NCBI RefSeq assembly: GCF_003918875.1
Contig: NW_025765187.1
Location: forward strand, 1-64,000
DNA: 64,000 nucleotides
Direction: 5' to 3'
From: Haliotis rubra
Taxonomy: Eukaryota
Part shown: positions 6,235-49,205 of the stretch, piece by piece
Numbering within the stretch: position 1 is the first letter of the stretch
Layout of the letters: the number at the start of each line of letters is the position of its first letter
Program-made: the position numbers and the translations under genes
The notes under the pieces: model-generated
Database searches by the model: none
Seen by the model: only the letters and a program-made list of their open reading frames with translations
What the model was told of the DNA's origin: nothing

Positions 6235-7868
6235 CGGCCCATGTAAATATCTGCAGTGTTTGCAAAGTACAAGGGAAGACAACTCCTGCCACCTCGTGGT
6301 GCTCCGTCTGTGACGATGTCTTCTGTGATGGATGTCTGGAGATGCACAACATGATGCCAATGTCACGTGACCATGAAGTTGTGGGTTTGTCTGATACTAC
6401 CAAAAGAAAAGCCAAGCAACGCCTCATGTGTAAACTCCACAAAGACGAACAGATTAAGTTGTTCTGTAAGGATTGTAGGGTGGCCATTTGTCATACATGC
6501 TGCAGTATAAAACACAGGAAATGTGACGATGTTGATACTTTAAATAACATGACGCCTGTTGTCAGAGAACACCTGTCAAATCAAACCCAAGAACTGAAAA
6601 TCAAAATGACAACTTCAGAAAAGAGAATTACTTTCAGGAAATCTCAAATTGAAGAAATAGAGTCCAATGCGCAAATTATAAAAGATGAAATCAGACAATT
6701 ACGTCAGAAAGTGGTAGAAGTGATTTTACGGAAGGAGAAACAACTCCTTGATAAAGTCGACCGATCTTCCGATGAACAATTACAGGAATTACAAGCAGAT
6801 ATAAAATCCCAGGAGATTGAGCTGCAGATGTACCAGCAACAGTATGAGTTCACAGCCAAAGCTGTCACGTCCAACTGTGAGGTGGACATGTATGCCATCT
6901 ATGAGTCGGTGGGTGAGGAGTCGACAGACAACAGAGACAGGGACAACCGACCAGCGCCAGGAAGGGTTGTATTTACTCACGACATGGACAAGCTGAGTAA
7001 AGCAGTGGATGAACTACAGCTAGGGAAGGTTGAAGTTGTCAGAGGTGTGAGTGACCACCAGTCTACCCCTGTTCTACATCACACTATTGACTGTAAGGCA
7101 GATAATGACATCAGGTATCCTGAATTGTATGACGTCACAGTGTTGACTGTTGAGGGTATAAAAGTAACAGTAGTTGCGGACTACAATAACAAAAGCATCA
7201 AAACATATCACACATCAAAACCAAACACACTAAGTAATCATCTACTACTTTCCTATAGTCCTTATCAACTAGCAAAGCTAAATGAGAGTCGGATAGCTGT
7301 CAGTTTTCCGGGCAGTCAGGAAATAGTTACAGTGGATGTTACTCCAGATCCTGTATTGTTGTCAACTATCAAAACAAGTAAAAGGTACTTCGCTCTAGCC
7401 TGTCTGAGTCCTTCACAGCTGGTGGTGGCAGGTACAAAACTACAGTCTCACTATGTGGACATACTGGACATGACAGGGAGGATACTGAAGTCTATCAACA
7501 CGGGTGTCATAAAGAATCCAAACTGTATCCATGTCACCAGTAATAACAACTTGATAGTTAGTAAAGGATCAGTAAAATCCCTCGTATCTGTGACCAGGGA
7601 AGGAGAAGCTGTTTTCACCTACACACCCACAGGGGACAGAGCTTTGAGATGGCCATTGGGTATCACAACAACAAGCACTGGGGATATCCTGTTTGTAGAC
7701 CGCGTCTCCCACAAGGTGATTCAGCTGACAGAGTCAGGGCAGTTTGTCAGAGATGTCCTCACACAACAGGATGGTCTGGAATATCCTTGTGGTATCTGTC
7801 TTGATGGGGACGGGTTTGTGTATGTTACATGTGAGCGATATGTAAAGGTATTCAAATTTAACAAGTGA
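6235..7868 (+). CDS. TRIM-NHL copy 1, coding exon 2 (B-box1, B-box2, coiled coil, NHL beta-propeller); TRIM2/3/56/71-like E3 ligase
   Basis: Acceptor TTCTTTGCCATTACAG|CG at 6234/6235. CSVC...CSVCDDVFCDGCLEMH...DH (B-box1), CKLH...FCKDCRVAICHTC...H (B-box2), a heptad-rich segment, and NHL-type repeats (LRWPLGITTTSTGDILFVD, LEYPCGICLDGDGFVYV). Open frame to TGA 7868. Confidence 0.93.
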
Positions 7869-8632
7869 TTCGTGTTTCAAATATACTCTTACAAAAAGTT
7901 GGTGAATATTATTTTTAATTTACGATTGATAAAGCTGGGAGATATATCGGAGCAATCAATGTTGATGATAATGGACATTTTGAGAGTGCATCACCACTTA
8001 CACAAACTTATGGCCATAGTAGTTTGTACAGAAATAGCTCTTAAAAGATGATTGGTGTATGATGTGAAAACCGTCAAAATCCAGAATGACACCGGATGCA
8101 CGTGTATGGGGCACTGCGTTGTGCACGTGCATCCCATGCATTGTGTTTAGGGGCGGTGATAAAAAGACATGGCTGTGCGTTCATAAGATGTCTGTCTTGG
8201 AAACATTTGTTAACTCTTATACTTCCTATCTAAATTTGAAGTTCAGGTTCAGGCTTTTGTGAAGAGTATACGGACATAATTCGATCACACAACACAATAT
8301 CTGTTACAAGCCAACTTCAGGTACTGTTTATGGCTTTTCATGTAATTCTTAAAGTTAGCACATTGACGAAACACTGGATCTCATGTTTCATAACAAATAG
8401 TTTTAATCACAGAGATGAGACTAGCGTTGATGAAGAAAACAGTGACAAACATCCATTATTATCATATTATTCTTCATTTTTGCCAGGTCCAATGTGGTTT
8501 AACATGATGGTACGACAAAATGCAGTTATTCCAAAATAATCTAAAGTGCGACTCATGAACTATCTATCCGTAAAATCGCATTGATATGCTTTTCGGCACT
8601 TCTACAGTAATGTTTATGTATTATGAATATTC

Positions 8633-8638
8633 AATAAA
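8633..8638 (+). terminator. Candidate polyadenylation signal of TRIM copy 1
   Basis: AATAAA about 765 nt after the stop, conserved at 30233, 40812 and 50050 in the paralogous 3' regions. Confidence 0.55.
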
Positions 8639-8839
8639 CATTGTGCAATATAGCACATTCAGTGAAATTCAGAATCGTATTTGCTATGTTTTATGTTGCC
8701 TGCGTGTTGTTAATAAATGCATGCTGACCTCTTCGTACTGACGTTACGCCATGTGGCCATACATTGGACCAGGTTTAACGCTTTTACTTCCAGGAAGACA
8801 GAACTTATTTTGATGTTCAGTGTGCATCCACATCAGTTC

Positions 8840-9578
8840 AGGGTGGTGGGGTAACCAAGTGGTTAAAGCTTTCACTTGTCACGCCGATTCCCCGCATGGG
8901 TACAATGTGTGAAGCCCATTTCTCGAGTTCCCCATGGTGATATTGATGGAATGCTGCTAAACCCAAACTCACTCACTCACTCTACAGCAGTTACCCTGTG
9001 TCCAACTTTTTTCTGAATAACTACAATCCATCTCCTGTATATTGGTTGTACAAGCACTCCCTACCACAGAGCCTAGACCTTGTATGGAAGTCACGAAGAC
9101 ATAAGGGCTAAGATCGCTGTGTGGGACAGGGTGGTGGGGTAACCAAGTGGTTAAATCATTCACTTGTCACGCCGATTCCCCACATGGGTACAATGTGCAA
9201 AGCCCATTTCTCGAGTTCCCCATGGTGATATTGCTGGAATACTGCTAAACCCAAACTCACTCACTCACTCCACAGAAGTACCTATGTGGCCACTATTTTT
9301 CTGAATAACTGCAATCCATCTCCTGTATATTGGTTGTACAAGCACTCCCTACCACAGAGCCTAGACCTTGTATGGAAGTCACGAAGACATAAGGGTTAAG
9401 ATCGCTGTGTGGGACAGGGTGGTGGGGTAGCCTAGCAGTTTAAGCGTTCGTTCGCCACGCCGAAGATGCGGGTTCGATTCTCCACGAGTTTACAATATGT
9501 TAACCCCATTTCTGGTGTCCCTCGCCGTGATATAGCTGGAATATTGCTAAAAGCAGAGTAAAATTATACTTAATCACC
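8840..9578 (+). repeat. Three family-A SINEs linked by a 289-bp tandem duplication (SINE + spacer)
   Basis: Units at 8840-9127 and 9128-9416 are near-identical, and a third SINE head follows at 9417. Tails are (ACTC)n. Confidence 0.85.
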
Positions 9579-10366
9579 TCCGAGGAGCAATGTGACGTTG
9601 TACAAAACAAACAGCGCTACGATTTATTTTTGATAAAAATTAGAGCTTAGATCGCTCTGTGGAACAGTATCAGGTTCCTGGCCAAGGGATCTTGATAGAT
9701 ATTTGAGTTCATATTTTGCTGAGCACGAATAGTGTCTTGATTAAGTCTACATCTTAAGAGTTAAAACAAAACATAGACACAAGTTACTTTTATGATCCCG
9801 GAGCCTGGTTGTGATGTACACAACAAGAATTAGGACCAATTCTAACCAGGAACTCTCTGTGTGTGAAAAGTTGAGAGAAACCAAAGAAGTATTTCTCAGG
9901 CACTTGTCACTTCGTTGTCAATTCTTCAAGGTTGGTTGTCTTTATTGCCCAATCTCTCGCCAAGCAATAGTCCAGTTTTGTTAAAATAGTCTGAAGATAT
10001 CCAATCGCGAGTATGGACCAGACAATCCGGTGATGAACATTACATCACTGACGTATTTGAATAGGATGACATTGATCAAACAAGTTAGCAAATCTGACCG
10101 CACAAAAAGTTCCCAGTCTGGCCTATGACATCAGTGAGCAATTTGTATAGGATGACATGCATCAAACAAAGCTGAAAGTCTGACAACACGAAAATATCCG
10201 AGTCTGGATCAGACAATCCAGTGATTAACATGACATCAGTACCTTGTATAGGATGACATTCATCAAACTAGTCTGTGAGTTTGACCACACGATCGATCCT
10301 ACTAGTTGCTTTATACAGTACGCTTGGGAAGCTGGGAACCAACCACTCACTGAAATCATCATAAAA

Positions 10367-10527
10367 GGTGGTGGGGTAGTCTAGTGGTTAAAGCATTCGC
10401 TTGTCACGCTGAAGACCCAGGTTCGATTCATGGGTACAATGTGTGGAGCCTATATCTGGTGTCCACTGCTGTGAAATCGCTGGCAAATTGCTAAAAACGA
10501 CATAATCTACTCTCACTCACCCACTCA
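10367..10527 (+). mobile_element. tRNA-derived SINE (family A)
   Basis: GGTGGTGGGGTAGTCTAGTGGTTAAAGC...GGTTCGATTC...CTCACTCAC tail. Paralogous copies lie at about 14570-14712, 31346-31506 and 51175-51332. Confidence 0.8.
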
Positions 10528-10989
10528 CGTCACCGACACCTATCAGATCAGATTACCTACTTGAATTACCCTCCCTTAAACCACTACGACTATCACCTAA
10601 GACGTCGAGTTCATCCATTTTCTACAGAGAGGATATTATTAGACTGTGACACTAATACTCTTCCATCCAAAACAGGGAACCTTTGTGAAAAATGATAAAT
10701 TCAACCAATCCCTTCAGAGCTCTGGTCTAGGGGAAGTAACTCTTCCCGTACACGATCTCCTGGTAATCAAAAACACAGTTTGTCAAAGTGCATGATTAAG
10801 GTATCACAACGTAGGAGAACGGTACTTCAGACTGATTCCTGGACTGATTCTTTAACGGGGAAACAGTGTTCTGGTCTCAGGTCTTGGAGCTATCGACACG
10901 TCACACACTTTGGACACGTGAAAGTATAGGTGATGTCTATGCTTCTGATAGTGTGTTCATACAGAACCTGAAACAATTATATCCAGTAA

Positions 10990-12457
10990 GGACGGGAGGG
11001 ACGTCAGAGTGGTTGGGGCGGGTAGGGTGGACGGGAGGGGGTCAACGTGAGTAGGGTGGGTAGGGTTGACGGAGGGGGTCAAAGTGAGTAGGGGCGTGTA
11101 GGGTTGGCAGGAGGGACGTCAAAGTGGGTGGGGCGGGTAGGGTGGACGGGAGGGGGTCAAAGTGAGTAGGGACAGGTAGGGTGGGCGGAGGGACGTCAGA
11201 GTGGGTGGGGCGGGTAGGGTTGACAGGAGGGACGTCAGAGTGGTTGGGGCGGGTAGGGTGGACGGAGGGACGTCAAAGTGGGTGGGGCAGCTAGGGTGGA
11301 CGGGAGGGACGTCAAAGTGGGGTGGGGCGAGTAGGGTGGACGGGAGGGGGTCAAAGTGAGTAGGGGCAGGTAGGGTAGACGGGAGGGACGTCAGAGTAGG
11401 TGGGGCGGGTAGGGTTGACGGGAGGGACGTCAAAGTGGGTGGGGCGGCTTCGGTGGACGGGAGGGACGTCAGAGTGGTTGGGGCGACTAGGGTGGACGGG
11501 AGGGACGTCAGAGTGGGAGGAGTGAGTAGTAGGGATGTAACGATTCACTCTCACTTCGATTCGATACGATTATCGATTCAATTCGTTCGATTCGATTCAC
11601 CAAAGCTGAAGACAAAGTCAAATTTGTTGTAGAATCAGTTTAATTTGGCAGACTTTGAAAAATCGGTACAATGCACCATTAGAACACTGTCAAGACATGT
11701 TGTCAACAAATACCCACTGAACAAGTGATCATGAAATTAAGTTTCAGTCACGAACTTTGGTGTCAAGTGTTCATTGTGACTGTAATGTCACTGTAAGTCA
11801 TTTGGAATGATCATGTTCGGTGCAAGGAATTTTCACTTGAAAGACATACCCTCTGGGCACTTACAATGTCTCCGGCAATGGAGAATACCCTCTCAATGGC
11901 CACACTTGTAGAAGCGAATTTTCAACATAATTTCTTACGATTTCAGATGAAATAAACTCTTAGTATTAGAATGTAAGTACTGTATGAATCGAAGCGAAAT
12001 GGATGCATTTGAAATCGAGATCGAATCGTACATCTATCGATCCGATTTTCGATGAACCGAACCGAATCGTGACACCCCTAGTGGGTACGGAGGACGGTGG
12101 GGACGTCAGAGTGGGTTGGGTGGGTACGGTGGACGGGGAGACGTCGAAGTGGGTGGGGCGGGTAGGGTAGACAGGAGGGATGTCAGAGTGGGTGGGGCGG
12201 GTATGGTAGACGGGAGGATTTCAGAGTGAGTGGGGCGGATAGGGTAGACGGGAAGGACGTGAAAGTAGGAAGGACGGGTAGGATGGACGGGAGGGACGTC
12301 AGAGTGAGTGGAGCGGGTAGGGTAGACGGAGGGACTTCAAAGTAGGTAGGACGGGTAGGGTGAACAGGAATGACGTCAGATAGGGTGGGACGGGTAGGGT
12401 GGAGGGAGGGTGGTCAGATAGGGTGGGACGGGTAGGGTAGAGGGGAGGTCCGTCAGA
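10990..12457 (+). repeat. G-rich 39-bp minisatellite with G-quadruplex potential, split by a MITE
   Basis: Consensus GGGAGGGACGTCAGAGTGGGTGGGGCGGGTAGGGTGGAC repeated at 10990-11529 and 12081-12457. Confidence 0.92.
11530..12080. mobile_element. Non-autonomous hAT-like MITE (551 bp)
   Basis: TIRs TAGGGATGTAACGATTC / GAATCGTGACACCCCTA, subterminal (CGATT)n motifs, and an imperfect 8-bp TSD GTGAGTAG / GTGGGTAC. Confidence 0.85.
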
Positions 12458-15168: not shown

Positions 15169-15174
15169 GGATAT

Positions 15175-15395: not shown

Positions 15396-15461
15396 TAGTC
15401 ACAGTACTGTGACAAGTTCACTGCACGTTGCTGTACCCGCAACTAGCTATAGCTTACGAAA

Positions 15462-17110: not shown

Positions 17111-17210
17111 GTAGCTACCATCATGGAAAAAAGGCCGGGCTCACACATGGCAAGCTCTCAACAATAACTAAATATAAAGCTTTGCAACCGACCAGGGTTT
17201 CCTTTCTTTG

Positions 17211-26236: not shown

Positions 26237-28526
26237 ATGGCGGCTGCCAAAATATTGACAGACAACCACCTCACCTGTGTCATCTGTACCGAGGTGTTCA
26301 CAGACCCTGCCACACTTCAGTGTAATCACACATTCTGTAAGTCCTGTCTGTTGAAATACACCAACACACAGCCTGAAGCAATACAAGCCAAGTCCATCCC
26401 ATGTCCCTCCTGTAGACAACTGACGAAGGGGGCCACCCCTGACAGTCCAGTAGAGGAGTGGGTCAGTCAGCTGAAACCAAGCCATGTCATACAAGGGCTG
26501 ATGGACGACTTCGGACCAGGGAGCAAAGGTAACGAATTGACACTTGACGTCCAATGATTATTTTTAAATGTTGTGGAAATATGTAAAAAATGTCTTTTGT
26601 TGTAATTTTAAGATGGAATGAATATATACAATCAATGAATGATGTATGAAATATTTTCATTTGACTATATTTCAATTTTTCTGGTGTTTGGTATCCTTAC
26701 ATCAGTCGACATTTATTATCGACATTTGCATTGATTCTTCTCACATTCTTATTATTTTGAAATTCAATTTCCAACACTATAATTTGTCTCTAAGTTAATT
26801 ATTGTACAATGTAACTGATTCTAGGAAATTTCAATACACTTATATATGTGTTCCTTTATCCAGAACAAAAACAGCTTGTTCTTTGCCATTACAGCGGCCC
26901 ATGTAAATATCTGCAGTGTTTGCAAAGTACAAGGGAAGACAACTCCTGCCATCTCGTGGTGCTCCGTCTGTGACGATGTCTTCTGTGATGGATGTCTGAA
27001 GATGCACAACGTGATGACGATGTTACGTGACCATGAAGTTGTGGATGTGTCTGATACCACCAAAAGAAAAGCCAAGCAACGCTTCATGTGTAAAATCCAC
27101 AAAGACGAACAGATTAAGTTGTTCTGTAAGGATTGTGGGATGGCCATTTGTCACACATGCTGCAGTATAAAACACAGGAAATGTGACGATGTTGATACTT
27201 TAGATAACATGACCCCTGTTGTCAGAGAACACCTGTCAAATCAAAAGCACGAACTGAAAATGAAAATGACAACTTCAGAAAACAAAATAATGTTCAGGAA
27301 ATCTCAAATTGAAGAAATAGAGTCCAATGCGCAAAGTATAAAAGATGAAATCAGACAATTACGTAAGAAAGTGGTAGAAGTGATTTTACGGAAGGAGAAA
27401 CAACTCCTTGATAAAGTCGACCGATCTTCCGATAAACAATTACAGGAATTAAAAGCAGAAATAAAATCCCAGGAGATTGAGCTGCAGATGTACCAGCAAC
27501 AGTATGAGTTCACAGCCAATGCTGTCTCGTCCAACAGTGAGATGGACATGTATGCCGTCTATGAGTCAGTGGGTGAGTCAACAGACAACAGAGACAGGGA
27601 CAACCAACCAGCACCAGGAAGGGTTGTATTTACTCACGACATGGACAAGCTGAGTAAAGCAGTGGATGAGCTACAGCTAGGGGAGGTTGATGTTGTCGGT
27701 GGTGTGAGTGACCACCAGTCTACCCCTGTTCTACATCACACTATTGACTGTCAGGCAGATGATAATGACATTGGGGAGCCTGAATTGTTTGACGTCACAG
27801 TGTTGACTGTTGATGGTATAAAAGTAACAGTAGTTGCAGATAACAATAACAACAGCATCAAAACATATCAAACATCAAAATCAAACACCCTAAGTAATCG
27901 CCTACTACTTTCCTATAGTCCTTATCAAATAGCAAAGCTAAGTGAACGTCGGATAGCTGTCAGTGTTCCGGGCAGTCAGGAAATAGTTACAGTGGATGTT
28001 ACTCCAGATCCTGTATTGCTGTCAACTATCAAAACAACTAAAAGCTACTTTGCTCTAGCCTGTCTGAGTCCTTCACAGCTGGTGGCAGGTACAAATAGAC
28101 AGTCTCACTCTGTGGACATACTGGACATGACAGGGAAGATACTGAAGTCTATCAACACGGGTGTCATAAAGAATCCAAACTATATCCATGTCACCAGTAA
28201 TAACAACTTGATAGTCAGTGAAGCATCAGTAAAATCCCTCGTATCTGTGACCAGTGAAGGAGAAGCTGTTTTCACCTACACACCCACAAGGGACAGAGCT
28301 CTGATGTATCAACGGGGTATCACAACAACCAGCACAGGAGATATCCTGCTTGTAGACCGCGACTCCCACAAAGGTGATTCAGCTGACAGCGTCAGGGCAG
28401 TTTGTCAGAGATGTCCTCACACAGCAGGATGGTCTGGAAGATCCTCGTGGTATCTGTCTTGATGGGGACGGGTTTGTGTATGTTACATGTAGGCGATATG
28501 TAAAGGTATTCAAATTGAAAAAGTGA
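26237..28526 (+). pseudogene. TRIM-NHL copy 2, join(26237..26528,26895..28526); +1 frameshift near 28371 (pseudogene, truncated allele or sequence error)
   Basis: Splice sites are as in copy 1. CACAAAGG replaces CACAAGG, giving a stop at 28462 (619 aa, last NHL blades lost). Removing one A restores a 640-aa frame ending at TGA 28526. Confidence 0.85.
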
Positions 28527-28987
28527 GACGTGTTTCAAATATACTCTTCAAAAAAGTAGGGTGATTTGTTTTCATTTACGATTGATAAAGCTGGGAGATA
28601 TATCGGAGTAAATCAATGTTGATATGATGATAATGAACATTTTAGAGTGCATCGCCACTTGCGCTTCCTGATGACCATAGTTTGTACAGTAATCGCTGTA
28701 AAAGGATGATTGGTATATGATGTGAAATTTGCATGTGTACGATGTTCATTCAGTTGTATGTGATTCCAGCAAACAATTGTATACCAGATGCAAGATGATT
28801 GTAAACAATGATGGTCTACAGTGATTTATCGACTAGCTTTGAAAACCGTCAAAATCCAGAATGACACCCAATGCACGTGTATGGGGCTAATGCGTTGTGC
28901 ACGTGCATCCCATGCGTTTTGTTTAGGGTTGGTGATCAAGAGAAATGCCTGTGCGTTCGTAAGATGTCTGTCTTTGAAGCTTTTGTT

Positions 28988-29389
28988 GACATGACAGGGA
29001 GGATACTGAAGTCTATCAACACGGGTGCCATAGAGAATCCAGACTGTATCCATGTCACCAGAAATAACAACTTGATAGTCAGTGAAGGAAAAGTAAAATC
29101 CCTTGTATCTGTGACCAGTGAAGGAGAAGCTGTTTTCACCTACACACCACCCGGGGACAGAGCTCTGAAAAGGCCATGGGGTATCACAACAACCAGCACA
29201 GGAGATATCCTGCTTGTAGACCGCGACTCCCACAAGGTGATTCAGCTGACAGAGTCAGGGCAGTTTGTCAGAGATGTCCTCACACAACAGGATGGTCTGG
29301 AATATCCTTGTGGTATCTGTCTTGATGGGGACGGGTTTGTGTATGTTACATGTGGGCGATATGTAAAGGTGTTCAAATTGAAAAAGTAA
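28988..29389 (+). pseudogene. Orphan NHL C-terminal cassette (copy 2b), open frame
   Basis: DMTGRILKSINTG...VFKLKK* is fused to 3' UTR sequence at GAAGCTTTTGTT|GACATGACAGGG. The first 39 codons of ORF 28871-29389 are UTR-derived. Confidence 0.85.
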
Positions 29390-36367: not shown

Positions 36368-37652
36368 CACACGTTAATATTTCACAATACAAACAAAGTT
36401 ATAACCATACCTTGCATTTTAGCAAAGATTTCGTTTAATTGTTGGATGTTTTTTAGTGGTGAGTACGAGTGGTATTTCAATTTTGTTTGAGCACAAGATC
36501 CGGGTTAGAACTGGTCGTAAGAGGCGAGATCGGGGGATCAGGCTCACTGATCAGGTTGGCACATGTCACCGTCTCCCAACTGCTCATGATGTTGATATTA
36601 CTATAAAATATAGGTAGCTTGAGTTTTTAGCACATACTTTTAATTGTGGGATGTTGTTGGGGGAGATGCGGAAGGTATGTTCTGGTATAGTGTCACCTGC
36701 TGAAATTTCAATTCTGAAAATGGCTCTTATATCGGTGCCCTTTTACAAACTATTGTTGTAATCAGCATAAGGTAACATGGAGTTTTAAAGACAAGTCGAT
36801 CATGGGCTTCATGACGATACACAAGGGTTCACCAGAGTTACGTCCCTTTCAACTTTCCTTATGCAATACCATCTACTGCAGCTTCATGGCTTTTGATATG
36901 TCTGTGCGTAGGTGAGCGCTTGCGTGTGCGCGTATGTATGTGTGTTACTTACTTTATTCAGTTAAAAGAACCTCATGCATCCAGAATTGTAGGTTCAGAT
37001 TAAGTGACAGTATACGAACGTGTCGCCTTTTTGACACTTCAACATTCACTGCAGGTACCACTCCTATAGTTTCGAGTGGTACTTTATGAGCAACTGCCAC
37101 TATTTAGGAGCAAGCAATAAAGGTGGAATTATACTCCTAATTACCAATACAAAATGTATGTGATACTGACTGTTTTGAAATAAAACAATAATTAACAAGG
37201 AGCTAGTCTCCAGTTGACACATCTGTTGACACATATTACCTACTAGTATTAACCGTTCGAAAATGAAACCGGGTATTAAAGTCTTTAAACCCACACATCA
37301 TACATATTGAAATTAACCCGTACTGGAAACGACGTTGTTCTTCTACTTTCGCTTAATATGATTTTTATTGATATTTTTTCAAGATATTTGACTCGATGTT
37401 GTGTACGTGTATTGCTCATAAATGGATGAAGCTAAAGTCAAAAGATATTTTCGCCTTTCCTTCGTGCAACGAGGTTCTTCCGTATACAGTTACATGCACA
37501 CTAACTGCACGTCAATAAGATGTTACGCCTTTGACGTTCGGGTAGAATCTATCGAATAGCCGTCTGAAGAAGGCAAAACACATTTCTTGTATCAGACCAC
37601 ATTCTTTTTAAAGCGACAAAACGACATATTTAAACCATGTATTGCTCTTCAG

Positions 37653-39969
37653 ATGGCGACTGCCAAGATACTGACAGACCACCACCTCACCTGTGTCATC
37701 TGTACTGAGGTGTTCACAGACCCTACCACACTTCAGTGTAATCACACATTCTGTAAGTCCTGTCTGCTGAAATACACCAACACACAGCCTGAAGCAATAC
37801 AAGCCAAGTCCATCCCATGTCCCTCCTGTAGACAACTGACGAAGGTGACCACCCCTGACAGTCCAGTAGAGGAGTGGGTCAGTCAGCTGAAACCAAGCCA
37901 CGTCATACAGGGACTGATAGATGACTTTGGACCAGGGGGCAAAGGTAACGAATTGGCACTTGACGTTCAATGATTATTTTTAAATGTTGTGGAAATATGT
38001 ATAATACGTTTGAGTCAGTTGTGGAACAAAATTTGTGTTTTGTTGTAATTTTTAAATTGAATGAGTTTATACACTCCATGAATAATTTATGGATATTTTG
38101 ATTTGAGAACACTATTTCAATTTTTCAAGTGTTTGCTTTTCTGTAAACCCGATACATTAACGACATTTATTTTCGACATTGATTACTTCTCAAATACTTC
38201 TTGTCTTGAAAATCAACTTTCCAACACCGTCATTTGTATCTAAGTTAATCTACTTGGAGTGCGTCTGATTCTAGGAAATTTCCATGCCCTAATGAATATG
38301 TTCCTTTACCCAGAAGAAAATCCAGATTGCTCTTTGTCATTACAGCGGCCCTTGTAAATATCTGCAGTGTTTGCAAAACACAAGGGAAGGCAAGTCCTGC
38401 CATCGGTGCCCGTGGTGCTCCGTCTGTGACGAGGTCTTCTGTTATGGATGTCTGAAGATGCACAACATAATGACAATGTTACGTGACCATGAAGTTTTCG
38501 GCGTGTCTGATACTACCAAAAGAAAAGCCAAGCAACGCTCCATGTGTAAAATCCACAAAGACAAACAGATCGAGTTGTTCTGTAAGGATTGTAGGATGGC
38601 CATTTGTCATACATGCTGCAGTATAAAACACAGGAAATGTGACGATGTTGATACTTTAGATAACATGATCCCTGTTATCAGAGAACACCTGTCAAACCTG
38701 AAACTCAAAATGACAACTTCAGAAAAGAGAATTATCTTCAAGAAATCTCAACTTGAAAAAACAGTGTCTAATGCGCAAAGTATAAAAGATGAAATCAGAC
38801 AATTACGTCAGAAAGTGGTAGAAGTGATTTTAAGGAAGGAGAAACAACTCCTTGTTAAAGTTGATCGGTTTTCCAATAAACAATTACAGGAATTACAAGC
38901 AGAAATAAAATCCCAGGAGATTGAGCTGCAGATGTACCAGCAACAGTATCAGTTCACAGTAAATGCTGTCACGTCCAACTGTGAGATGGACATGTATGCC
39001 GTCTATGAGTCTGTTGGTGAGGAGTCGACAGACAACAGAGACACGGACAACCGACCCGCACCAGGAAGGGTTGTATTCACTCACGACATGGACAAGCTGA
39101 GTAAAGCAGTGGATGAGCTACAGCTAGGGGAGGTTGAAGTTGTCAGTGGTGTGAGTGACCACCAGTCTACCCCTGTTCTACATCACACTATTGACTGTAA
39201 GGCAGATGATGACAGTGGGGGTCCTGATTTGTTTGACGTCACAGTATTGACTGTTGATGGTATAAAAATAACAGTAGTTGCAGACTACACTAACAACAGC
39301 ATCAAAACATATCTAACATCAAAACAAAACACACTAAGTAATCGTCTATACGTTTCCAATTGTCCTCGTCAAATAGCAAAGCTAAATGAGCGTCGGATAG
39401 CTGTCAGTGTTCCGGTGAGTCAGGAAATAGTTACAGTGGATGTTACTCCAGATCCTGTATTGCTGTCAACTATCAAAACAACTAAAAGCTACTTCGCTCT
39501 AGCCTGTCTGAGTCCTTCACTGCTGGTGGCAGGTACATAAGAACAGTCTCACTCTGTGGACATACTGAACATGACAGGGAGGACACTGAAGTCTATCAAC
39601 ACGGGTGTCATAAAGAATCCAAACTATATCCATGTCACCAGTAATAACAACTTGATAGTCAGTGAAGCATCAGTAAAATCCCTCGTATCTGTGACCAGTG
39701 AAGGAGAAGCTGTTTTCACCTACACTCCCACAAGGGACAGAGCTCTGATGTATCAACGGGGTATCACAACAACCAGCACAGGAGATATCCTGCTTGTAGA
39801 CCGCGACTCCCACAAGGTGATTCAGCTGACAGCGTCAGGGCAGTTTGTCAGAGATGTCCTCACACAACAGGATGGTCTGGAAGATCCTCGTGGTATCTGT
39901 CTTGATGGGGACGGGTTTGTGTATGTTACATGTAGGCGATATGTAAAGGTATTCAAATTGAAAAAGTGA
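37653..39969 (+). pseudogene. TRIM-NHL copy 3, join(37653..37944,38346..39969), disrupted
   Basis: A 5-nt insertion GGTGC (38405-38409) shifts the frame in B-box1 and gives a stop at 38453-38455. There is also an in-frame TAA at 39538-39540 and a 12-nt deletion in the coiled coil. The RING exon is intact. Confidence 0.9.
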
Positions 39970-41011
39970 GACGTGTTTCAAATATACTCTTCAAAAAAAG
40001 TAGGTGATTTGTTTTTCATTTACGATTGATAAAGCTGGGAGATATATCGGAGTAAATCAATGTTGATATGATGATAATGAACATTTTAGAGTGCATCGCC
40101 ACTTGCGCTTCCTGATGACCATAGTTTGTACAGTAATCGCTGTAAAAGGATGATTGGTATATGATGTGAAATTTGCATGTGTACGATGTTCATTCAGTTG
40201 TATGTGATTCCAGCAAACAATTGTATACCAGATGCAAGATGATTGTAAAAAATGATGGTCTACAGTGATTTATCGACTAGCTTTGAAAACCGTCAAAATC
40301 CAGAATGACACCCAATGCACGTGTATGGGGCTAATGCGTTGTGCACGTGCATCCCATGCGTTGTGTTTAGGGTTGGTGATCAAGAGAAATGCCTGTGCGT
40401 TCGTAAGATGTCTGTCTTTGAAGCTTTTGTTAACTCTTATACTTCCTATCTAAATTTAAAGTTCAGGTTCCCCTGCTTTGTTTTAAGAGTATGTGAACAT
40501 AATTCGATCACACAACACAATATTTGCTACAGGCCAACGTCGGTACTGTTTATGGCTTTTCATGTCATTCATAAAGTTAGCACATTGACCAAACACTGGA
40601 TCTCATGTCTTATAGCAAATAGTTTTAATAACAGAGGTGAGACAAACGTTTATGAAGAAAACAGTAACAAATATCCATTATTATCATTTTATTCTTCATT
40701 TTTTCAATGTCCAATGTGGCTTAAGTGTGACTCACGAACTGTCTATCCGTAAAATCGAATTTATATGTTTTTCTGCATTTCTATAGGAATGTTTATGTAT
40801 TATGAATATTCAATAAACATACTGCTAAACCAAACTCACTCAGTAACTCACTCACTCACTCAATTCACAGAAGTACCTCTGTGGCCACCATTTTTCTGAA
40901 TAACTACAATGCATCTCCCTTATATTGGTTGTACAAGCACTCCCTACCACAGAGCCTAGATCTTGTATGGAAGTCACGAAGACATAAGGGCTAAGATAGC
41001 TGTGTGGGACA

Positions 41012-41445
41012 GGGTGGTGGGGTAACCAAGTGGTTAAAGCATTCACTTGTCACGCCGATTCCCCGCATGGGTACAATGTGCGAAGCCCATTTCTCGAGTT
41101 TCCCATGGTGATATTGCTTGAATGCTGCTAAACCCAAAAGTACTCACTCACTCCACAAAAGTACCTCTGTGGCCACCATTCTTCTGAATAACTACAATCC
41201 ATCTCCTGTATATTCGTTGTTCAAGCACTCCCTACCACAGAGCCTAGAGCTTGTATGGAAGTCACGAAGACATAAGGGCTAAGATCGCAGGGTGGTGGGG
41301 TGGGGTTTAAGCGTTCGTTCGCCACGCCGAAGATCAGGGTTCGATTCTCCACGAGTTTACAATATGTTAACCCCATTTCTGGTGTCCCTCACCGTGATAT
41401 AGCTGGAATATTGCTAAAAGCAGCATAAAACTAAACTCACTCACC
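41012..41445 (+). mobile_element. Two family-A SINEs (paralog of the 8840-9578 cluster)
   Basis: Same SINE-spacer-SINE arrangement as downstream of copy 1. Confidence 0.8.
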
Positions 41446-41994: not shown

Positions 41995-42178
41995 TGGTGG
42001 GTAGGGTAGACGGGAGGGACGTCAAAGTGGGTAGGACGGGTAGGGTGGACGGGAGGGACGTCAAAGTGGGTAGGACGGGTAGGGTGGACGGGAGGGACGT
42101 CAGAGTGGGTAGAACGGGTAGGGTGGACGGGAGGGACGTCAGATTGGGTGGGGCGGGTGGGAGGGGATGGGATGGGAA
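41995..42178 (+). repeat. G-rich 39-bp minisatellite, about 4 copies
   Basis: Units GGGTAGGGTGGACGGGAGGGACGTCAAAGTGGGTAGGAC, the same family as 10990-12457. Confidence 0.9.
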
Positions 42179-42589
42179 AGGCTTATCCGAGGGTTCACAA
42201 AGACCGTGGTCAAGACTACCAGTTGTTCGACTTCCATTTTGTGGAAAAGCGAAGGCTGAGTGGGTTAGACAGCTGACTTTGTGTGCTGGTGATAAGGTAC
42301 TGCCTCTGGGGTATTGGGTCCAATCCTGGATAGACCTTAACCCAACAAAACACTAGAATCTGTACTCTACTGAGGAAGTGTAATCCAAAATATAACATGT
42401 ATGGCAACTCTCTTTCTTACAAAGCACAACATTCGTCTTCATTCAGTTTATTTAGCAAACGGCCTCAGGCGAGCCCTTGAACACAACACACATTTGACGT
42501 GAACGTCTCATATAGTGATAACTACAAGTTCGTGCGGGTAGCGACACTTTTATCAGCAGGCAAGAGAAAAGAATCACTTGGAATTCAGA

Positions 42590-42763
42590 GTGAGTGAGTG
42601 ATTGACTGCGTTTGGTTTTACGCAGGTTTTAGCAGTATTCTAGCAATATCACGGCGGGGAACACCAGAAATAAGCTTCACATATTCTACCCATTTTGGGA
42701 ATCGAATCCGGGTATTCGGCGAGACGAGCGAACCATTTCACTACTAGGCAATCCCAACGCCCC
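42590..42763 (-). mobile_element. tRNA-derived SINE (family A), paralog of 1-130
   Basis: (GAGT)n tail at 42590 and antisense body through ...GGAATCGAATCCGGG...CCCAACGCCCC. Confidence 0.85.
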
Positions 42764-43479
42764 ATGAAATAACAAACGTTTTGATACAGTCGCAAACAGT
42801 TATGGTATCGGTAATTATGGTACCAATCAGAAAGATTATCAGCTGTTAAACAAGGAGGATAAGTTTCTTTGATGTTCAAATGTATTTTGATTTCTAAGAG
42901 AAATAGATCCATTCCTTATTTCACAGAGAGATGGATCATGATATCAAACGAAACTATAAACGATAAACATAGTTTGAATATTTTAGATGTACAAACTGGA
43001 ATAACATACATACAAGTCTTGTTTTCCATGTAGGGCAAGGGTACCTGAAGATAGAAAGGCGCTACACTGACCAGGGATACTCTACAACATAGAGTCTCCC
43101 TGCACTGACTAAACAACTCAACGTGCAGTGTTGATAAAATCATAGGGCTTAAAATTTCCTGTTACTTCATACTCACAAAACACACAAGAGTTTTCTCAAG
43201 TAAAATTCATTAAAATACCCAGTCAAGTACAGAAAAAAGTATTATAAACCCATATACACTCAAAAACGTAAGCATCGATTCATATTCGAAACAACCAGGT
43301 AACACACTCACCAACGATTTGATTTAAAAATAAATTGGAGATATTCAAATTACACATATTTCAGAAAACTGCCTCATCGAAAGACTCATCATATCAGTTA
43401 TGTTGATTCCAGAGACTTGAAAAGTTATTGTAAACAAGTGTTTGTACTTTGAAACGAGCACATACCCGTCGTCAGTATA

Positions 43480-43574
43480 TCACGTGAACCAAGCGACGTC
43501 ACGTGACACACACCACAACCAGGAAGTGGAGCGGGGACAGTCTGTCGATTGACGGTGTTGTAATTGTGGTAAGT
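43480..43574 (+). promoter_or_regulatory. Putative promoter and non-coding exon 1 of TRIM copy 4
   Basis: TCACGTGA (43480-43487), GTCACGTGAC (43498-43507), CAGGAAGT (43520-43527) and donor GTAAGT (43569-43574). Confidence 0.6.
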
Positions 43575-44654
43575 CTCACGTTAATATGACACGATACAAA
43601 CATAGATATTACTACCTATAACAGTACCTTGTGTTTTTAGCAAACATTCCTTCTGATTTGGACTGTTATCTGGGGAGTAGGGTAAGGTAACGTTATTTCA
43701 CTTCAGCACAGGTTAGGACAGAGGTTTCGCTTTAATACAGAAAGTAGACTTGGAATCAACATGGACTAACCTATGTACCAGTGTCGTGTCAGCTGCTGAA
43801 ATGTCAGTGCTGAAAATGACTACCCATCTCGGTGCCCTTCTATAAAGTGTTTGTGTTATCAACATTCATTAACACGGAGTTTTAAGACAAATCAGTACAG
43901 AACATCACGGCTTTGTGGCGATACACTTGATATCGCAGAGTTATGTCCCTTTAAATATGCAATCGTGACAGTTTACAAACGTGTGTGGATGCGTTCCTGA
44001 ACATTCACTACTTTAAGAACACCCCTATATTTCCTAATAGTACTTTGTGATGTACTTCCACTATTTACAAACAAGCGAAAAAGGTGGGATTTATACAGCA
44101 TTTTACCAATACAAAATATACATGATACTCGCTGTTTTAGAATAATACAATGAATTAACCCAGAACGGATCTTTGGGTGAACAGGTTCTTTCAGCTGCTG
44201 AAGTCCCAGACATCCGTTAGTGACACATGTTACTCATTCTCCGTTAGAAAAATGAAACAGTGTTTAGAAAACCTCGTGCATGTTGAAATTAACCCGTAAT
44301 GGAAAAGACTTTGTTCTTCTACTTTTGGTTTGAATCCAGTCAAACTATTTTCAATCAGATGATTCAGATCTTTGCTTAAAACAATACCCAGGGTTTAGGT
44401 TTTTAAAAAATTAAATCAGGAAAACTTTTTTTGTATCCATCCTCAATAAATGGTCAGTGTATTTTAAAAAGAATATGATTTTTATTCCTATTTTCTCCAG
44501 TCATTTCCATCAATGTTGTGTACATAGGTCAAACGACTTTTCCCCCTTTCCAATAGCTATTCGACTGTACATGAAAACCAGATGTTGCACCTTTGCAACA
44601 ACCCATTTTCCACTGTACTGTTTTCCATGGACAACCCAGGCTTCACGTAAACGG

Positions 44655-44824
44655 GGGGCGGTGGGGTAGCCTAATGGTTAAAGCGTTGGCTCGTCACGCC
44701 GAAGACCCGGGTTCGAATCCCCACATGGGTACAATGTGTGAAGCCCATTTCTGGTGTCCCCCGCCGTGATGTTGCTGGAATATTGCTAAAAGCGGCGTAA
44801 AACCAAAATCAGTCAGTCAGTCAG
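44655..44824 (+). mobile_element. Young full-length tRNA-derived SINE (family A) with a 12-bp TSD
   Basis: A box TAGCCTAATGG, B box GGTTCGAATCC, (AGTC)n tail, and perfect TSD TCACGTAAACGG (44643-44654 / 44825-44836). The empty site is at about 2102-2113 in copy 1. Confidence 0.93.
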
Positions 44825-46911
44825 TCACGTAAACGGTTAGTTTATGGTATTCCCCACCTTTGATAAATGCAACATTTTGAATATGACAATATAGAGTCTT
44901 TCTCCGCATATTTAGAATCAGATAATAATGATAATATTTCTATTCTTGTCATAAATGTCTATTTCAAGCGGCTCCCCGACTGAAGCTAACGTAGCGATCT
45001 CGAATAAGCTTGTTTTACTCCTGATATAACGCGAGTGATGACCACACGGTGCTTCTGTTGACTTTTACAACAAAGTACGTCCAGAGTGAAGTTTTAATGC
45101 TTATCTCTTTACATTTAGTGAGAAACGTGGCAAAATGTAGACTGTACGATCTGATGTACGCTGCAGGAAATACATATGGCACTGTAGGGAGAGTTACTGA
45201 TGGCGACTTTCCACTGTTACCACTGTGTTCTTGTTTCAGACTGTTAGACTATTATTTGTCATCTTATTGTCGCTCATCCACAGATGTTTTAAAGGTCCGA
45301 CAACGAATTGTGGATGGTAGCATTTCTATTATAAGTGTTCATGACTTTCTGAATTCGAAAGGGCTATCGAAATTGTATTTCCTTTTTATGTGGAGTGAAG
45401 GGCAGATAATCTTTTGCTGAGAAATAACCAAAAAATAATCCAAACATTGAAAACCATCGTTAACGTATCATCAGTTATACAACTAAAGTTATGTACGTCA
45501 CTTCATTTAACATAAGATGTATATAATTCTATCGCAAATTTTATGAACATCAATATTATGAAACCATTATTTGCTATTCATGATTCGTTAACTACAACTG
45601 GCAAGTTAAACATAGCAATCAAGTACACAATACACCTAGGCCAAACTTCCTCAAGTCCGGGCACCTCTGACGTAATAATCATTTCAAATACATGTATCAT
45701 ATTTCATATCTTTCGTTCTTAGTGTTTATTTATAATATTTCTATACCTTTTGAATATTTTTGTTCAATAATCATAATTTACGCGTTAGCGATTTACAACG
45801 AAACTTATATTTGATGTAAAGTAATGTTTTGCGCAACGTTCTATAATATAAGTCTCAAACGTTTTGCATTTCTACGCTAACAAAAGATAGAATAAATCTA
45901 TAATATCATAATCAATCAAGTGAGTATTTTTAATAGGACTGAGGCCCATTTCAATTACATGTGAAAATTACTTTTCTAAATAATGCCTCAGAAAAATAGG
46001 GATATTTTTAAGAAAGACAACAAACTTGTAAGCACCTAGCACCTTGGTCTTTTAAAATAATTGTGACTTTGAATGCCCTAATGACCATGCTTTAGTCACT
46101 GAATTTAATTGTTATTAGAAATCTTCGAGTGTGTCTTCATTGTCTAATATTCTATGTGTGATTGACACCAAGAATCATTTCAACGAATATTATAATTCTA
46201 ATGATGAATGTACGAACAACGGATCGAACCTGCGAAATGATCCAAAACATGTACACTCCAAATAGATATTCTGGGTTATCGGTGTAAAAATCTGCATGGA
46301 GGTCAGAATCGAGAAATTTACGTCATTTTTAATATTTTGGTACAATGTGACATGATCATTGGTTGTTAATTATAAGATAGTCTGTAAAATATTCTCTGTT
46401 CAAACGCTGCCCGAACGTCGATGACAGTAAAACTCAACTTATATATGCACTGCAGCGACACGAACATAGAGCAGACGACTGTTTACTTGAGCTGTCAGAG
46501 ATAAATGATATGTATCAATGTATATGTGCAGGTGTTCATTGTTCATTGTGTACGTTGTTCTCATAATAATGTAGCGATGGTCGCGATTTAAAGGTTTTAT
46601 TACATGTATGGCACCTGTACATTCTACCGTTGTAGAATATGAATTAAAGCCACAAGAGTTATCCCCCTTTCACATCAGCGGCACTGAAGAATGTAGAATA
46701 TCTTTCGTGCAAGGAGCTGTCGTCTTCTGTCGTCAGTTATATTATCACTGCGCATGTCTTATTCAGATATTACGCCTTTTAATGTCGGGATGTTGCTTAC
46801 ATTTAAACGTTTCAAGAAGGCAAAACAGTTTTGTTGTTTTAGACCATATTCTCTTTAAAACTGCAAAAGCCGCGTTCATATATATTTAAACCGTATATTC
46901 CTCTTCAGATA

Positions 46912-47203
46912 ATGGCGGCTGCCAAAATATTGACAGACAACCACCTTACCTGTGTCATCTGTACTGAGGTGTTCACAGACCCTGCCACACTTCAGTGTAA
47001 TCACACATTCTGTAAGTCCTGTCTGCTGAAATACACCAACACACAGCCTGAAGCAATACAAGCCAAGTCCATCCCATGTCCCTCCTGTAGACAACTGACG
47101 AAGGTGACCACCTCTGACAGTCCAGTAGAGGAGTGGTTCAGTCAGCTGAAACCAAGCCACGTCATACAGGGGCTGATGGACGACTTTGGACCAGGGAGCA
47201 AAG
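46912..47203 (+). CDS. TRIM-NHL copy 4, coding exon 1 (RING); join(46912..47203,47578..49205), 639 aa
   Basis: RING core identical to copy 1, with donor AAAG|GTAACG at 47203/47204. Confidence 0.93.
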
Positions 47204-47577
47204 GTAACGAATTGACACTTGACGTTCAATGATTATTTTTTTAAATGTTGTGGAAATATGTAAAATTGTGTTTTGTTGTAATTTTAAGATTGAATGAATA
47301 TATACACTCAATGAATGATTTATGAAATATTTCATTTGACACTATTTAAATATTTCTGGTGTTTGGTATCTTGTCAATTCATTACATTAGTCGACTTTTA
47401 TTATGGACATTTGCATTGATTCTTCTCAAATACTTATTGTCTTGAAATTCAATTAAACACTATCATTTGTCTCTAAGTTAATTATTGTACAATGTAACTG
47501 ATTCTAGGAAATTTCAATACACTTATATATGTGTTCCATTATCCAGAACAAAAACAGCTTGTTCTTTGCCATTACAG

Positions 47578-49205
47578 CGGCCCTTGTAAATATCTGCAGT
47601 GTTTGCAAAACACAAGGGAAGACAACTCCTGCCACCTCGTGGTGTTCCGTCTGTGACGAGGTCTTCTGTGATGGATGTCTGAAGATGCACAACATGATGA
47701 CGATGTTACGTGACCATGAAGTTGTGGGCGTGTCTGATACCACAAAAAGAAAAGCCAAGCAACGCTTCATGTGTAAAATCCACAAAGACGAACAGATCGA
47801 GTTGTTCTGTAAGGATTGTAGGGTGGCCATTTGTCATATATGCTGCAGTATAAAACACAGGAAATGTGACGATGTTGATACTTTAGATAACATGACCCCT
47901 GTAATCAGAGAACACCTGTCAAATCAAAACCAAGAACTGAAAATCAAAATGACAACTTCAGAAAACAGAATAATTTTCAGGAAATCTCAAATTGAAGAAA
48001 TAGAGTCCAATGCGCAAAGTATAAAAGATGAAATCAGACAATTACGTAAGAAAGTGGTAGAAATTATTTTACGGAAGGAGAAACAACTCCTTGATAAAGT
48101 CGACCGATCTTCCGATGAACAATTACAGGAATTACAAGCAGAAATAAAATCCCAGGAGATTGAGCTGCAGATGTACCAGCAACAGTATGAGTTCACAGCC
48201 AATGCTGTGACGTCCAACTGTGAGATGGACATGTATGCCGTCTATGAGTCAGTGGGTGAGTTGACAGACAACAGACACACGGACAACCGACCAGCACCAG
48301 GAAGGGTTGTATTCACTCACGACATGGACAAGCTGAGTAAAGCAGTGGATGAACTACAGCTAGGGAAGGTTGACGTTGTCGGTGGTGTGAGTGACCACCA
48401 GTCTACCCCTGTTCTACATCACACTATTGACTGTAAGGCAGATAATGACAATGACGATCCTTATTTGTATGACGTCACAGTGTTGACTGTTGATGGTATA
48501 AAAGTAACAGTAGTTGCAGATATCACTAACAAATGCATCAAAACATATCAAACATCAAAATCAAACACACTAAGTAATCATCTACTACTTTCCTTTTGTC
48601 CTCATCAAATAGCAAAGCTAAGTGAGAGTCGGATAGCTGTCTGTGTTCCGGGCAGTCGGGAAATAGTTACAGTGGATGTTACTCCAGATCCTGTATTGTT
48701 GTCAACTATCAAAACAGCTAAACAGTACTACGCTCTAGCCTGTCTGAGTCCTTCACAGCTGGTGGCAGGTACAAATAGACAGTCTCACTCTGTGGACATA
48801 CTGGACATGACAGGGAAGATACTGAAGTCTATCAACACGGGTGTCATAGAGAATCCGGACTATATCCATGTCACCAGTAAAAACAACTTGATAGTCAGTG
48901 AAGAATCAGTAAATTCCCTCGTATCTGTGACCAGTGAAGGAGAAGCTGTTTTCACCTACACTCCCACAGGGGGCAGAGCTTTGAAAAGGCCACAGGGTAT
49001 CACAACAACCAGCACAGGAGATATCCTGCTTGTAGACTGCAACTCCCACAAGGTGATTCAGCTGACAGAGTCAGGGCAGTTTGTCAGAGATGTCCTCACA
49101 CAACAGGATGGTCTGGAAGATCCTCGTGGTATGTGTCTTGATGGGGACGGGTTTGTGTATGTTACATGTAGGCGATATGTCAAGGTATTCAAATTGAAAA
49201 AGTGA
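47578..49205 (+). CDS. TRIM-NHL copy 4, coding exon 2 (B-boxes, coiled coil, NHL)
   Basis: Acceptor ATTACAG|CG at 47577/47578 and an uninterrupted frame to TGA 49205, with the same domains as copy 1. Confidence 0.93.

Follow-up and report, generated by a model that had tools for sequence, protein, structure and literature searches.

The window, by which is meant the whole 64,000-nucleotide stretch of Haliotis rubra contig C297 that was analysed, contains what is probably a birth-and-death array of TRIM-NHL ligases. The top face of the NHL propeller is diversifying in this array, and its targets would most plausibly be components of viruses or other parasites. The species, an abalone, is a gastropod and not a bivalve. 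Four tandem two-exon TRIM genes, all on the + strand, make up the array (Table 1). The RING comes from exon 1 in all four units; two B-boxes, a coiled coil and a six-bladed NHL propeller follow in exon 2. The spliced products of copies 1 and 4 are 641 aa and 639 aa long, and the exon 2 part of copy 1 is identical to the public protein P0002. A reading of the large open reading frames as RING-less B-box proteins was dropped; once the four units were aligned, a RING exon conserved upstream of these frames became visible, followed by a GT..AG intron.

Table 1. Features of the TRIM-NHL array, in positions of the window
Feature	Position	Strand	Description or basis
Copy 1 exon 1	5568..5859	+	Start codon and C3HC4 RING, 292 nt, ends in phase 1; translation, splice motifs
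Copy 1 intron	5860..6234	+	375 nt, GT..AG; homologous copy 2 intron skipped by a transcript contig
Copy 1 exon 2	6235..7868	+	B-box1, B-box2, coiled coil, NHL (7044-7865), stop TGA; intact
Copy 2 exon 1 (RING)	26237..26528	+	Translation, splice motifs
Copy 2 intron	26529..26894	+	366 nt; skipped exactly by one contig of run X8
Copy 2 exon 2	26895..28526	+	NHL from 27701; frameshifted; ancestral stop 28524-28526
Fragment 2b	28988..29389	+	Partial tandem duplicate of the 3' end (NHL blades 4-6), in open frame 28871-29389
Copy 3 exon 1 (RING)	37653..37944	+	One Ala-to-Thr change in the core
Copy 3 exon 2	38346..39969	+	Pseudogene
Copy 4 exon 1 (RING)	46912..47203	+	Translation; Pfam RING
Copy 4 intron	47204..47577	+	374 nt, GT..AG
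Copy 4 exon 2	47578..49205	+	Intact; B-boxes, 110-residue coiled-coil helix, disordered linker, NHL
Copy 4 NHL propeller	48384..49202	+	273 aa, 24 strands in 6 blades; AlphaFold
Copy 4 codons with posterior >0.9 for omega > 1	starts 48453, 48462, 48468, 48522, 48525, 48597, 48603, 48651	+	Site posteriors
Further copy 4 codons with posterior >0.9 for omega > 1	starts 48723, 48774, 48777, 48987, 48993, 49116, 49170	+	

The initial annotation had described an array of four copies. Four units are present, but inspection for frameshifts and stops found copies 1 and 4 intact and the other two damaged. In copy 2 a single additional A near 28370, either real or an assembly error, puts the terminal ~55 codons out of frame; in the read mapping the depth dips at 28309-28419 and no indel is reported. 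In copy 3, 5 nt are inserted at 38404-38408, 12 nt are deleted and a TAA stands at 39538-39540; over the last ~240 nt this copy differs from copy 2 by only 1 nt per 120. From 48804 onward copy 4 matches fragment 2b and the flank downstream of it at 97% identity. A joint from ~28438 to ~28930, by which the public model P0001 takes in this fragment, was not seen among the mapped contigs, which cannot prove its absence. With disrupted or partial genes making up two of the four window copies and about half of the close subfamily, the array is partly decaying.

The copy 2 intron has zero depth in runs X8 and X10 but is covered in the DNA runs. Since the intron is missing there and one contig skips it exactly, X8 and X10 were taken as RNA, with the caveat that they carry another species label and that their contigs are short and possibly derive from paralogs. 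The transcript contigs confirm the splice joint and show a spliced transcript.

The RING, the B-boxes and the coiled coil, which together make a TRIM protein, are all present. The zinc-ligand pattern C-x2-C-x11-C-x-H-x2-C-x2-C-x18-C-x2-C is found in exon 1 of all four copies with its eight ligands complete, and Pfam matches copy 1 exon 1 with zf-RING_UBOX (1.8e-10) and zf-C3HC4 (3.5e-9). As first reported, the RING core is the same in copies 1, 2 and 4 and differs once in copy 3; it lies in a separate upstream exon. Two stretches matching Pfam zf-B_box and an ANCHR-like B-box exceed the cut-offs in copies 1, 2 and 4, and the B-box Cys/His columns are invariant across 35 relatives. In the AlphaFold model of exon 2 a single unbroken helix spans residues 102-211, followed by short helices at 215-224 and 249-258, so that the predicted coiled coil follows the B-boxes as the TRIM order requires. 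Residues 225-270, a linker of ~45 residues, are disordered in the model. Pfam gave no filamin match between the coiled coil and the NHL and no match to a SPRY (B30.2) recognition domain. The predicted architecture is thus that of TRIM32/Thin and not of the TRIM2/3/71 type.

The NHL domain of copy 4 was modelled by AlphaFold with a pLDDT of 93.1 and a pTM of 0.91. Foldseek matched it to the solved NHL domains of Thin, TRIM2/3, TRIM71, Mei-P26 and Brat with a probability of 1.00 and TM scores of 0.77-0.82, and the Pfam NHL model passes its threshold in copies 1 and 4 as well as in fragment 2b. With this modelled C-terminal six-bladed propeller the proteins fall into the TRIM-NHL subfamily (class VII). 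In NHL domains of the Brat/LIN-41 type the ligand binds the top face, the surface defined by the d-a and b-c loops (PMC4015489, PMC5908797). Every loop string quoted in the initial annotation was found in the translations of the copies named for it, and in the AlphaFold model each of these variable stretches is a d-a (x-x-P-x-G) or b-c (D-x-x-N) loop of the top face. The faces were assigned from how the strands are connected, from where the C-terminus lies and from coordinate offsets, rather than from a residue-level alignment with TRIM2 or Brat. In TRIM2 the C-terminus lies on the face opposite the top (PMC9634614), and the abalone C-terminus likewise lies on the non-top face. TRIM2 D640, a top-groove residue, falls in a b-c loop by inferred numbering.

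The variable positions are concentrated on this top face. NG86 dN is 0.18-0.25 in the d-a and b-c loops against 0.04-0.07 in the strands and bottom loops, and a top-loop dN of 0.18-0.23 exceeds the intron divergence (about 0.06) by a factor of 3-4. The clustering of NHL differences in these loops is beyond chance, as shown by NG86 dN and by a Fisher test on the selected sites. The strands had been called nearly invariant; they are in fact about four times less variable than the loops. With the window copies only, loop dN/dS is 1.73 (95% CI 0.88-4.51), not significantly >1, and close H. rubra paralogs and relatives from three other Haliotis species were therefore added. Among six H. rubra paralogs top-loop dN/dS is 1.67 (95% CI 1.06-2.86), compared with 0.41 in the bottom loops and about 0.55 in the B-box/coiled-coil part.

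Codon site models were fitted with an implementation of our own, with branch lengths fixed from M0, to 16 relatives drawn from four Haliotis species, all of them intact genes apart from copy 2. Overall omega under M0 is 0.71-0.74. M2a is favored over M1a with a 2dlnL of 159 on one tree and of 144 when each of six recombination segments is given a separate tree, so the omega far above 1 persists when recombination is taken into account. For the NHL alone the 2dlnL is 171, with 13.5% of sites at an omega of 4.9. M7 against M8 on one tree gives a 2dlnL of 186; the M8a fit fell below that of M1a (M8a lnL -8593.81), probably through lack of convergence, and the M8-M8a test was not used. The B-box/coiled-coil part, as a negative control, shows no positive selection (2dlnL 2.9, p = 0.23) and dN/dS of the RING exon is about 0.25, which together with the selected NHL top face bears out the proposal of a constant effector joined to a variable face.

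Fifteen NHL sites are selected. Top loops hold 13 of them and the beginning of strand a the other two, leaving the bottom face with none (13/65 in d-a and b-c loops vs 2/200 elsewhere, Fisher p = 3e-7). By this loop assignment the variable sites sit on one face, and the claim of a single variable face thus survives this test. Trp (15.7x), Tyr (3.9x) and Arg (3.0x) are overrepresented at the selected sites, as is typical of binding hot spots.

Recombination is pervasive in these genes. The PHI test gives p = 0.001, the breakpoint scan still improves in AICc up to six segments, and the nearest paralog switches every ~120 nt. The two tests agree with the description of the loops as shuffled.

The array is part of a very large Haliotis-specific expansion with hundreds of paralogs. 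A first look at the H. rubra genome gave 877 candidates, and all 80 of those scored were matched (83 matches). The copies on contigs C1298, C2142 and C2500 are putative paralogs that may instead be divergent haplotypes. Two distant subfamilies of the same genome show the same selection pattern on single trees. In a subfamily that is only 41% identical, positions 29, 48, 74, 90, 132, 202 and 263 are selected again (2dlnL 102).

These observations bear on what the top face may recognize. It is possible, though unlikely, that diversification serves endogenous targets such as cellular mRNAs or proteins, selfish elements or abalone reproductive proteins and not pathogen sensing. All the characterised TRIM-NHL proteins closest in fold act as regulators in development or in neurons, and several of them bind RNA on the top face. 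The net charge of the 69 top-loop residues, counted from sequence and not as a surface potential, ranges from -11 to +6 among the 16 members, so some paralogs have a net-positive top face; the bottom-loop count is negative in all 16. The same range makes uniform RNA binding unlikely. The analogy with RNA binding by Brat and LIN-41 drawn at the outset is weak because, by this count, the top face is not uniformly basic. Moreover, an omega of 4-8 at the same positions in independent subfamilies, like hundreds of copies with rapid turnover, is unusual for regulators of conserved endogenous targets.

Neutral decay of redundant, pseudogenising duplicates, with relaxed constraint and loops that tolerate change, is largely refuted and very improbable. 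It would fit the frameshifts and stops in copies 2 and 3 and in several close relatives, as well as the high overall omega under M0. However, M1a with its neutral class is rejected (2dlnL 144-171) in a data set restricted to intact genes plus copy 2, top-loop dN exceeds intron divergence, and the bottom loops, which are equally exposed, have a dN/dS of 0.4 and no selected sites. Least credible of all is that gene conversion, mosaic assembly, or collapsed or duplicated haplotypes misled the site models: recombination is pervasive, the assembly is fragmented (2855 contigs) and synonymous divergence is about 1.5 times higher in the top loops, but per-segment trees alter the test little, the B-box/coiled-coil half recombines equally without a signal, and the pattern also appears in chromosome-scale assemblies of the three other species in the data set and in the other subfamilies.

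The preferred reading, a diversifying array of ligases directed at viruses or parasites, suggests the following mechanism. A constrained RING, two B-boxes and a long coiled-coil helix would form the effector, joined to the six-bladed NHL propeller. About 15-20 propeller residues are replaced again and again under positive selection; each loop has one or two of them, on either side of the conserved d-a Pro and after the Asp or Glu that ends strand b, and they thus ring the top face. Gene conversion or unequal crossing-over among paralogs also yields new combinations, and the turnover of copies through duplication, truncation and loss is continual. Most likely the variable top face is the substrate- or ligand-binding surface, and each paralog would therefore steer putative RING-dependent ubiquitination to a different fast-changing target. 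Such targets would most plausibly be components of viruses or other parasites, the most conjectural of these steps, and by analogy the array may act as an immune sensor.

Diversifying TRIM repertoires are known for the vertebrate SPRY/B30.2 domain. Primate TRIM5alpha/TRIM22 and teleost finTRIM/btr share with the abalone genes the RING-B-box-coiled-coil effector, tandem multigene expansion with birth-and-death turnover, and selection focused on surface loops of the C-terminal recognition domain (PMC2657112, PMC3845644); in abalone this selection is seen in the M2a vs M1a comparison, with 13 of the 15 sites in top loops. Their recognition domain, however, is B30.2/PRY-SPRY whereas that of abalone is an NHL beta-propeller, and antiviral function or induction has been shown for them and is putative for the abalone genes. 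Because its recognition domain is NHL, with no SPRY match, the abalone family is an analogue and not a member of the TRIM5/finTRIM type.

Among NHL proteins, human TRIM32 and Drosophila Thin/Abba likewise run from RING, B-box and coiled coil straight into the NHL with no filamin domain, and the Thin NHL is the best Foldseek match. They are single-copy, conserved and 14-20% identical in the NHL, unlike the abalone family with its two B-boxes and hundreds of paralogs. TRIM32 is reported to restrict influenza A via PB1 ubiquitination (PMC4461266), a precedent for an antiviral NHL-TRIM. Brat, LIN-41/TRIM71, Mei-P26 and NHL-2 have the same six-bladed fold (TM 0.75-0.81), but their top faces are conserved and electropositive whereas the abalone face is hypervariable and of widely differing net loop charge; TRIM71 also carries a filamin domain that the abalone family lacks. 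Among natural proteins of solved structure, TRIM2 and TRIM3 match best in sequence (profile E 1e-23 to 1e-24), and their C-terminal strands align with those of abalone. Unlike the abalone family, they are conserved neuronal ligases with a filamin domain, and we know of no expansion or diversifying selection in them.

A literature search of incomplete coverage found no description of positive selection on NHL loops in mollusc TRIMs, and an earlier one may exist. A broader reading is offered tentatively and falls short of being probable: abalone, and perhaps other molluscs, may possess a large germline-encoded intracellular NHL recognition repertoire. Hundreds of RING-coupled paralogs, with ~20 top-face residues diversified by selection and cassette-like gene conversion (possibly using spare fragments like 2b), would act as restriction factors against viruses, abalone herpesvirus being one example, and so form a convergent counterpart of TRIM5/finTRIM built without SPRY. 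If this is true, the design of a constant E3 ligase plus a hypervariable recognition face arose convergently on another fold, in a mollusc, and the NHL top face, a known RNA- and protein-binding platform, has become a rapidly adapting specificity surface. For binding tests, the shortlist of candidate specificity positions comprises about 15 residues per propeller, and the array belongs to a gene family that is a candidate for resistance to abalone herpesvirus and vibriosis in a farmed species.

The window, which makes up the first 64 kb of contig C297, is part of a 1.38-Gb genome, and the best protein matches of the window are Haliotis rubra (blacklip abalone) proteins, one of which is identical to exon 2 of copy 1. 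Self-comparison revealed four duplicated units, and their alignment showed that each large open reading frame is exon 2 of a gene with two exons. Exon 1 (292 nt) opens with the ATG and closes in phase 1, where a GT begins the intron. The introns of the four units are 366-401 nt long with an AG at the 3' end, and the frame carries on into the large open reading frame. Pfam places a C3HC4 RING in exon 1 (1.8e-10) and two B-boxes plus NHL repeats in exon 2. The AlphaFold model of copy 4 exon 2 consists, from N- to C-terminus, of two small zinc-finger folds, a 110-residue helix (102-211), a disordered linker without a filamin domain, and a propeller. The architecture is that of a complete TRIM-NHL protein of the TRIM32/Thin type; it has all the structural hallmarks of the TRIM and TRIM-NHL families and lacks only the filamin domain seen in TRIM2/3/71-type proteins.

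None of the sequencing runs found was recorded as RNA, but two small contig sets, X8 and X10, whose species label differs from that of the best DNA set, cover copy 2 in both its exons. The intron has zero depth in these sets and is covered by DNA runs, and one X8 contig lacks precisely the 366 nt of the predicted intron, whose ends are GT..AG. Copy 2 or a very close relative is therefore transcribed and spliced as modelled.

Features of the window, with the state of the four TRIM-NHL copies
Feature	Position	Description
Copy 1		Intact, 641 aa
Copy 2	near 28370	One extra A; frame of last ~55 codons shifted
Fragment 2b	28988-29389	Downstream of copy 2; partial duplicate, NHL blades 4-6
Copy 3		5-nt insertion, 12-nt deletion, premature TAA
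Copy 4		Intact, 639 aa
Copy 3 intron and 5' flank	37561-38345	Compared with other copies
RING exon	46912-47203	Compared with C2255 loci
Public automatic model P0001	26237-29389	792 aa
G-rich 39-nt minisatellite	10990-11517, 12093-12457, 41999-42158	About 4 to 14 copies, between gene units; explains the peak in GC and GC skew at 10-14 kb
288-nt unit	8839-9429, 40850-41437	About 2 tandem copies, downstream of copies 1 and 3
42-nt tandem repeat	60655-61462	19 copies, 95% match; both strands have long ORFs, in several frames

Fragment 2b, together with its flank, shares 97% identity with the matching part of copy 4. The close subfamily on three other contigs (C1298, C2142, C2500) adds 3 intact genes, 3 broken ones and four 3' fragments. 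This mix of intact, broken and fragmentary copies is birth-and-death evolution. The wider family is huge: a first look at the genome gave 877 candidates; 80 of these were scored and every one matched (83 matches). Orphan 3' NHL fragments adjoin full genes on several contigs. They span blades 4-6 in 2b and in two ~460-nt pieces (L006:822-1281 and L020:358-809), and ~900 nt at loci L016 and L018; such fragments may be left over from unequal crossing-over or may serve as donors for gene conversion. Model P0001 continues through the out-of-frame end of copy 2 and then splices into 2b, giving a protein with a duplicated part-propeller; no sequencing contig supports this joint. In four loci of H. 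rufescens and H. cracherodii (L031, L034, L035, L037) a 15-residue linker segment is tandemly duplicated just ahead of the propeller.

The loop sequences quoted in the initial annotation are all present in the translations, and the RING core, as it stated, is identical in copies 1, 2 and 4, while copy 3 differs by a single substitution. The NHL domain of copy 4, modelled by AlphaFold with 58 relatives (pLDDT 93.1, pTM 0.91), has 24 strands forming six four-stranded blades. Foldseek matched it to the NHL domains of Thin, TRIM2, TRIM3, TRIM71, Mei-P26 and Brat (TM 0.77-0.82). In strand order, each x-x-P-x-G loop comes ahead of the small-residue strand and each D-x-x-N loop comes after the strand next in line; since the strands alternate, the two loop types lie on one face of the modelled propeller. 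Three lines of evidence say that this variable-loop face is the top. First, in the Brat NHL domain the term top surface refers to the b-c and d-a loops (PMC4015489). Second, the TRIM2 C-terminus is on the bottom surface (PMC9634614), and the C-terminal strand of the copy 4 model runs away from a D-x-x-N-type loop. Third, the TRIM2 top-groove residue D640 maps to a b-c loop, using HMMER coordinate offsets and assuming that chain residue 1 is residue 464.

The codon alignment comprised 16 members, all intact or nearly so: from H. rubra, five intact genes plus copy 2 without its extra base, and 10 genes from H. rufescens, H. cracherodii and H. asinina. The PHI test was positive for all sites (p = 0.001) and for third codon positions (p = 0.012). 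A GARD-like IQ-TREE scan lowered the AICc from 17233 to 17023 and was still improving at six segments, the most tried, the coiled-coil/NHL junction being the best single breakpoint. The nearest paralog of each copy switches repeatedly across 120-nt windows. Because these tests are positive, "shuffled", the word first used for the loops, is a fair description. Copy 3 all but matches copy 2 over its last 240 nt.

Two further observations concern the exons. The RING exon differs from loci L013-L015 of contig C2255 by a dS of 0.23-0.32, far below that of exon 2 in the same gene pairs (1.1-1.5), a gap that suggests gene conversion confined to exon 1, or exon shuffling between subfamilies. Copy 3 stands apart from the other copies by K ~0.2 in its intron and 5' flank, against only 0.04-0.09 in its exons; this suggests that copy 3 is an older unit and that conversion homogenised its exons before it broke.

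Regional dN/dS (Nei-Gojobori, six H. rubra genes) was 1.67 (95% CI 1.06-2.86) in the 69 codons of the top loops, 0.65 (0.47-0.94) in the NHL remainder, 0.41 (0.20-0.93) in the bottom loops, 0.53 (0.31-0.97) in the B-boxes and 0.55 (0.38-0.81) in the coiled coil and linker. For copies 1 and 4, both intact, the top loops have a dN of 0.228, the introns a divergence of 0.062 and the NHL domain a dS of 0.066.

Site models were fitted with our own Goldman-Yang-type codon likelihood (F3x4), branch lengths being optimised under M0 and then given one scale factor. On one tree, M2a (lnL -8504.48) was favored over M1a (-8584.17) by 2dlnL 159, with 6.9% of sites at omega 4.5. The recombination-aware fit called for initially, with six segment trees, gave 2dlnL 144 (-8313.89 to -8241.74; 7.2% of sites, omega 4.2). 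The signal was strong in the 263 NHL codons (M1a -4454.99, M2a -4369.34, 2dlnL 171, p = 6e-38; 13.5% of sites, omega 4.9). The first 270 codons (B-boxes, coiled coil) supported no positively selected class in M2a against M1a (-3855.97, -3854.52; 2dlnL 2.9, p = 0.23). They serve as an internal control, since recombination is as strong there as in the NHL domain and yet the signal is absent.

Seventeen sites had a posterior > 0.9. Within the propeller they favour one face, as the initial annotation had proposed: 13 are in top loops (enrichment in top loops, Fisher p = 3e-7) and none in bottom loops or strands b to d. Two others open strand a (positions 29, 204), one is in B-box 1 and one lies directly ahead of the propeller. 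The selected positions sit on either side of the conserved Pro in each d-a loop and after the acidic residue with which strand b ends. Every blade has such sites except blade 4 (best 0.85); the gapped b-c loop columns of blades 4 and 5 were left out. Trp (15.7-fold), Tyr (3.9-fold) and Arg (3.0-fold), typical interface hot-spot residues, are enriched at these sites.

Two distant H. rubra subfamilies were put through the same analysis on single trees. The subfamily on contig C2298 (7 paralogs, 41% identical to copy 4) gave 2dlnL 102. Its selected sites fall in top loops (12) and at the start of strand a (4), and the bottom face has none; positions 29, 48, 74, 90, 132, 202 and 263 are selected in both it and the window subfamily. 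The C2255 subfamily (4 paralogs) gave 2dlnL 24.7.

The evolutionary pattern is solid: a constrained RING/B-box/coiled-coil module is joined to a propeller whose top face is under recurrent positive selection and recombination, in a multigene family that turns over rapidly. A literature search found no published report of selection on NHL loops. By analogy with known TRIM proteins, the coiled coil would dimerise, the RING would recruit an E2 and the NHL top face would choose the substrate. The RNA-binding role named for these loops at the outset is unlikely in a uniform, Brat-like form because the charge of the top loops varies between -11 and +6; the ligands are more likely to be proteins or of mixed kind. 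The abalone family would work like the SPRY-based diversifying TRIMs, TRIM5 and finTRIM (PMC2657112), yet does not belong to them. TRIM32 is reported to restrict influenza (PMC4461266), and oyster TRIM genes are among the loci linked to surviving herpesvirus (PMC9437489). In Aplysia the TRIM genes number only 22 (PMC9334734), which fits a lineage-specific expansion in abalone. By analogy with TRIM5, finTRIM and TRIM32, the selective agent may be a fast-evolving parasite.
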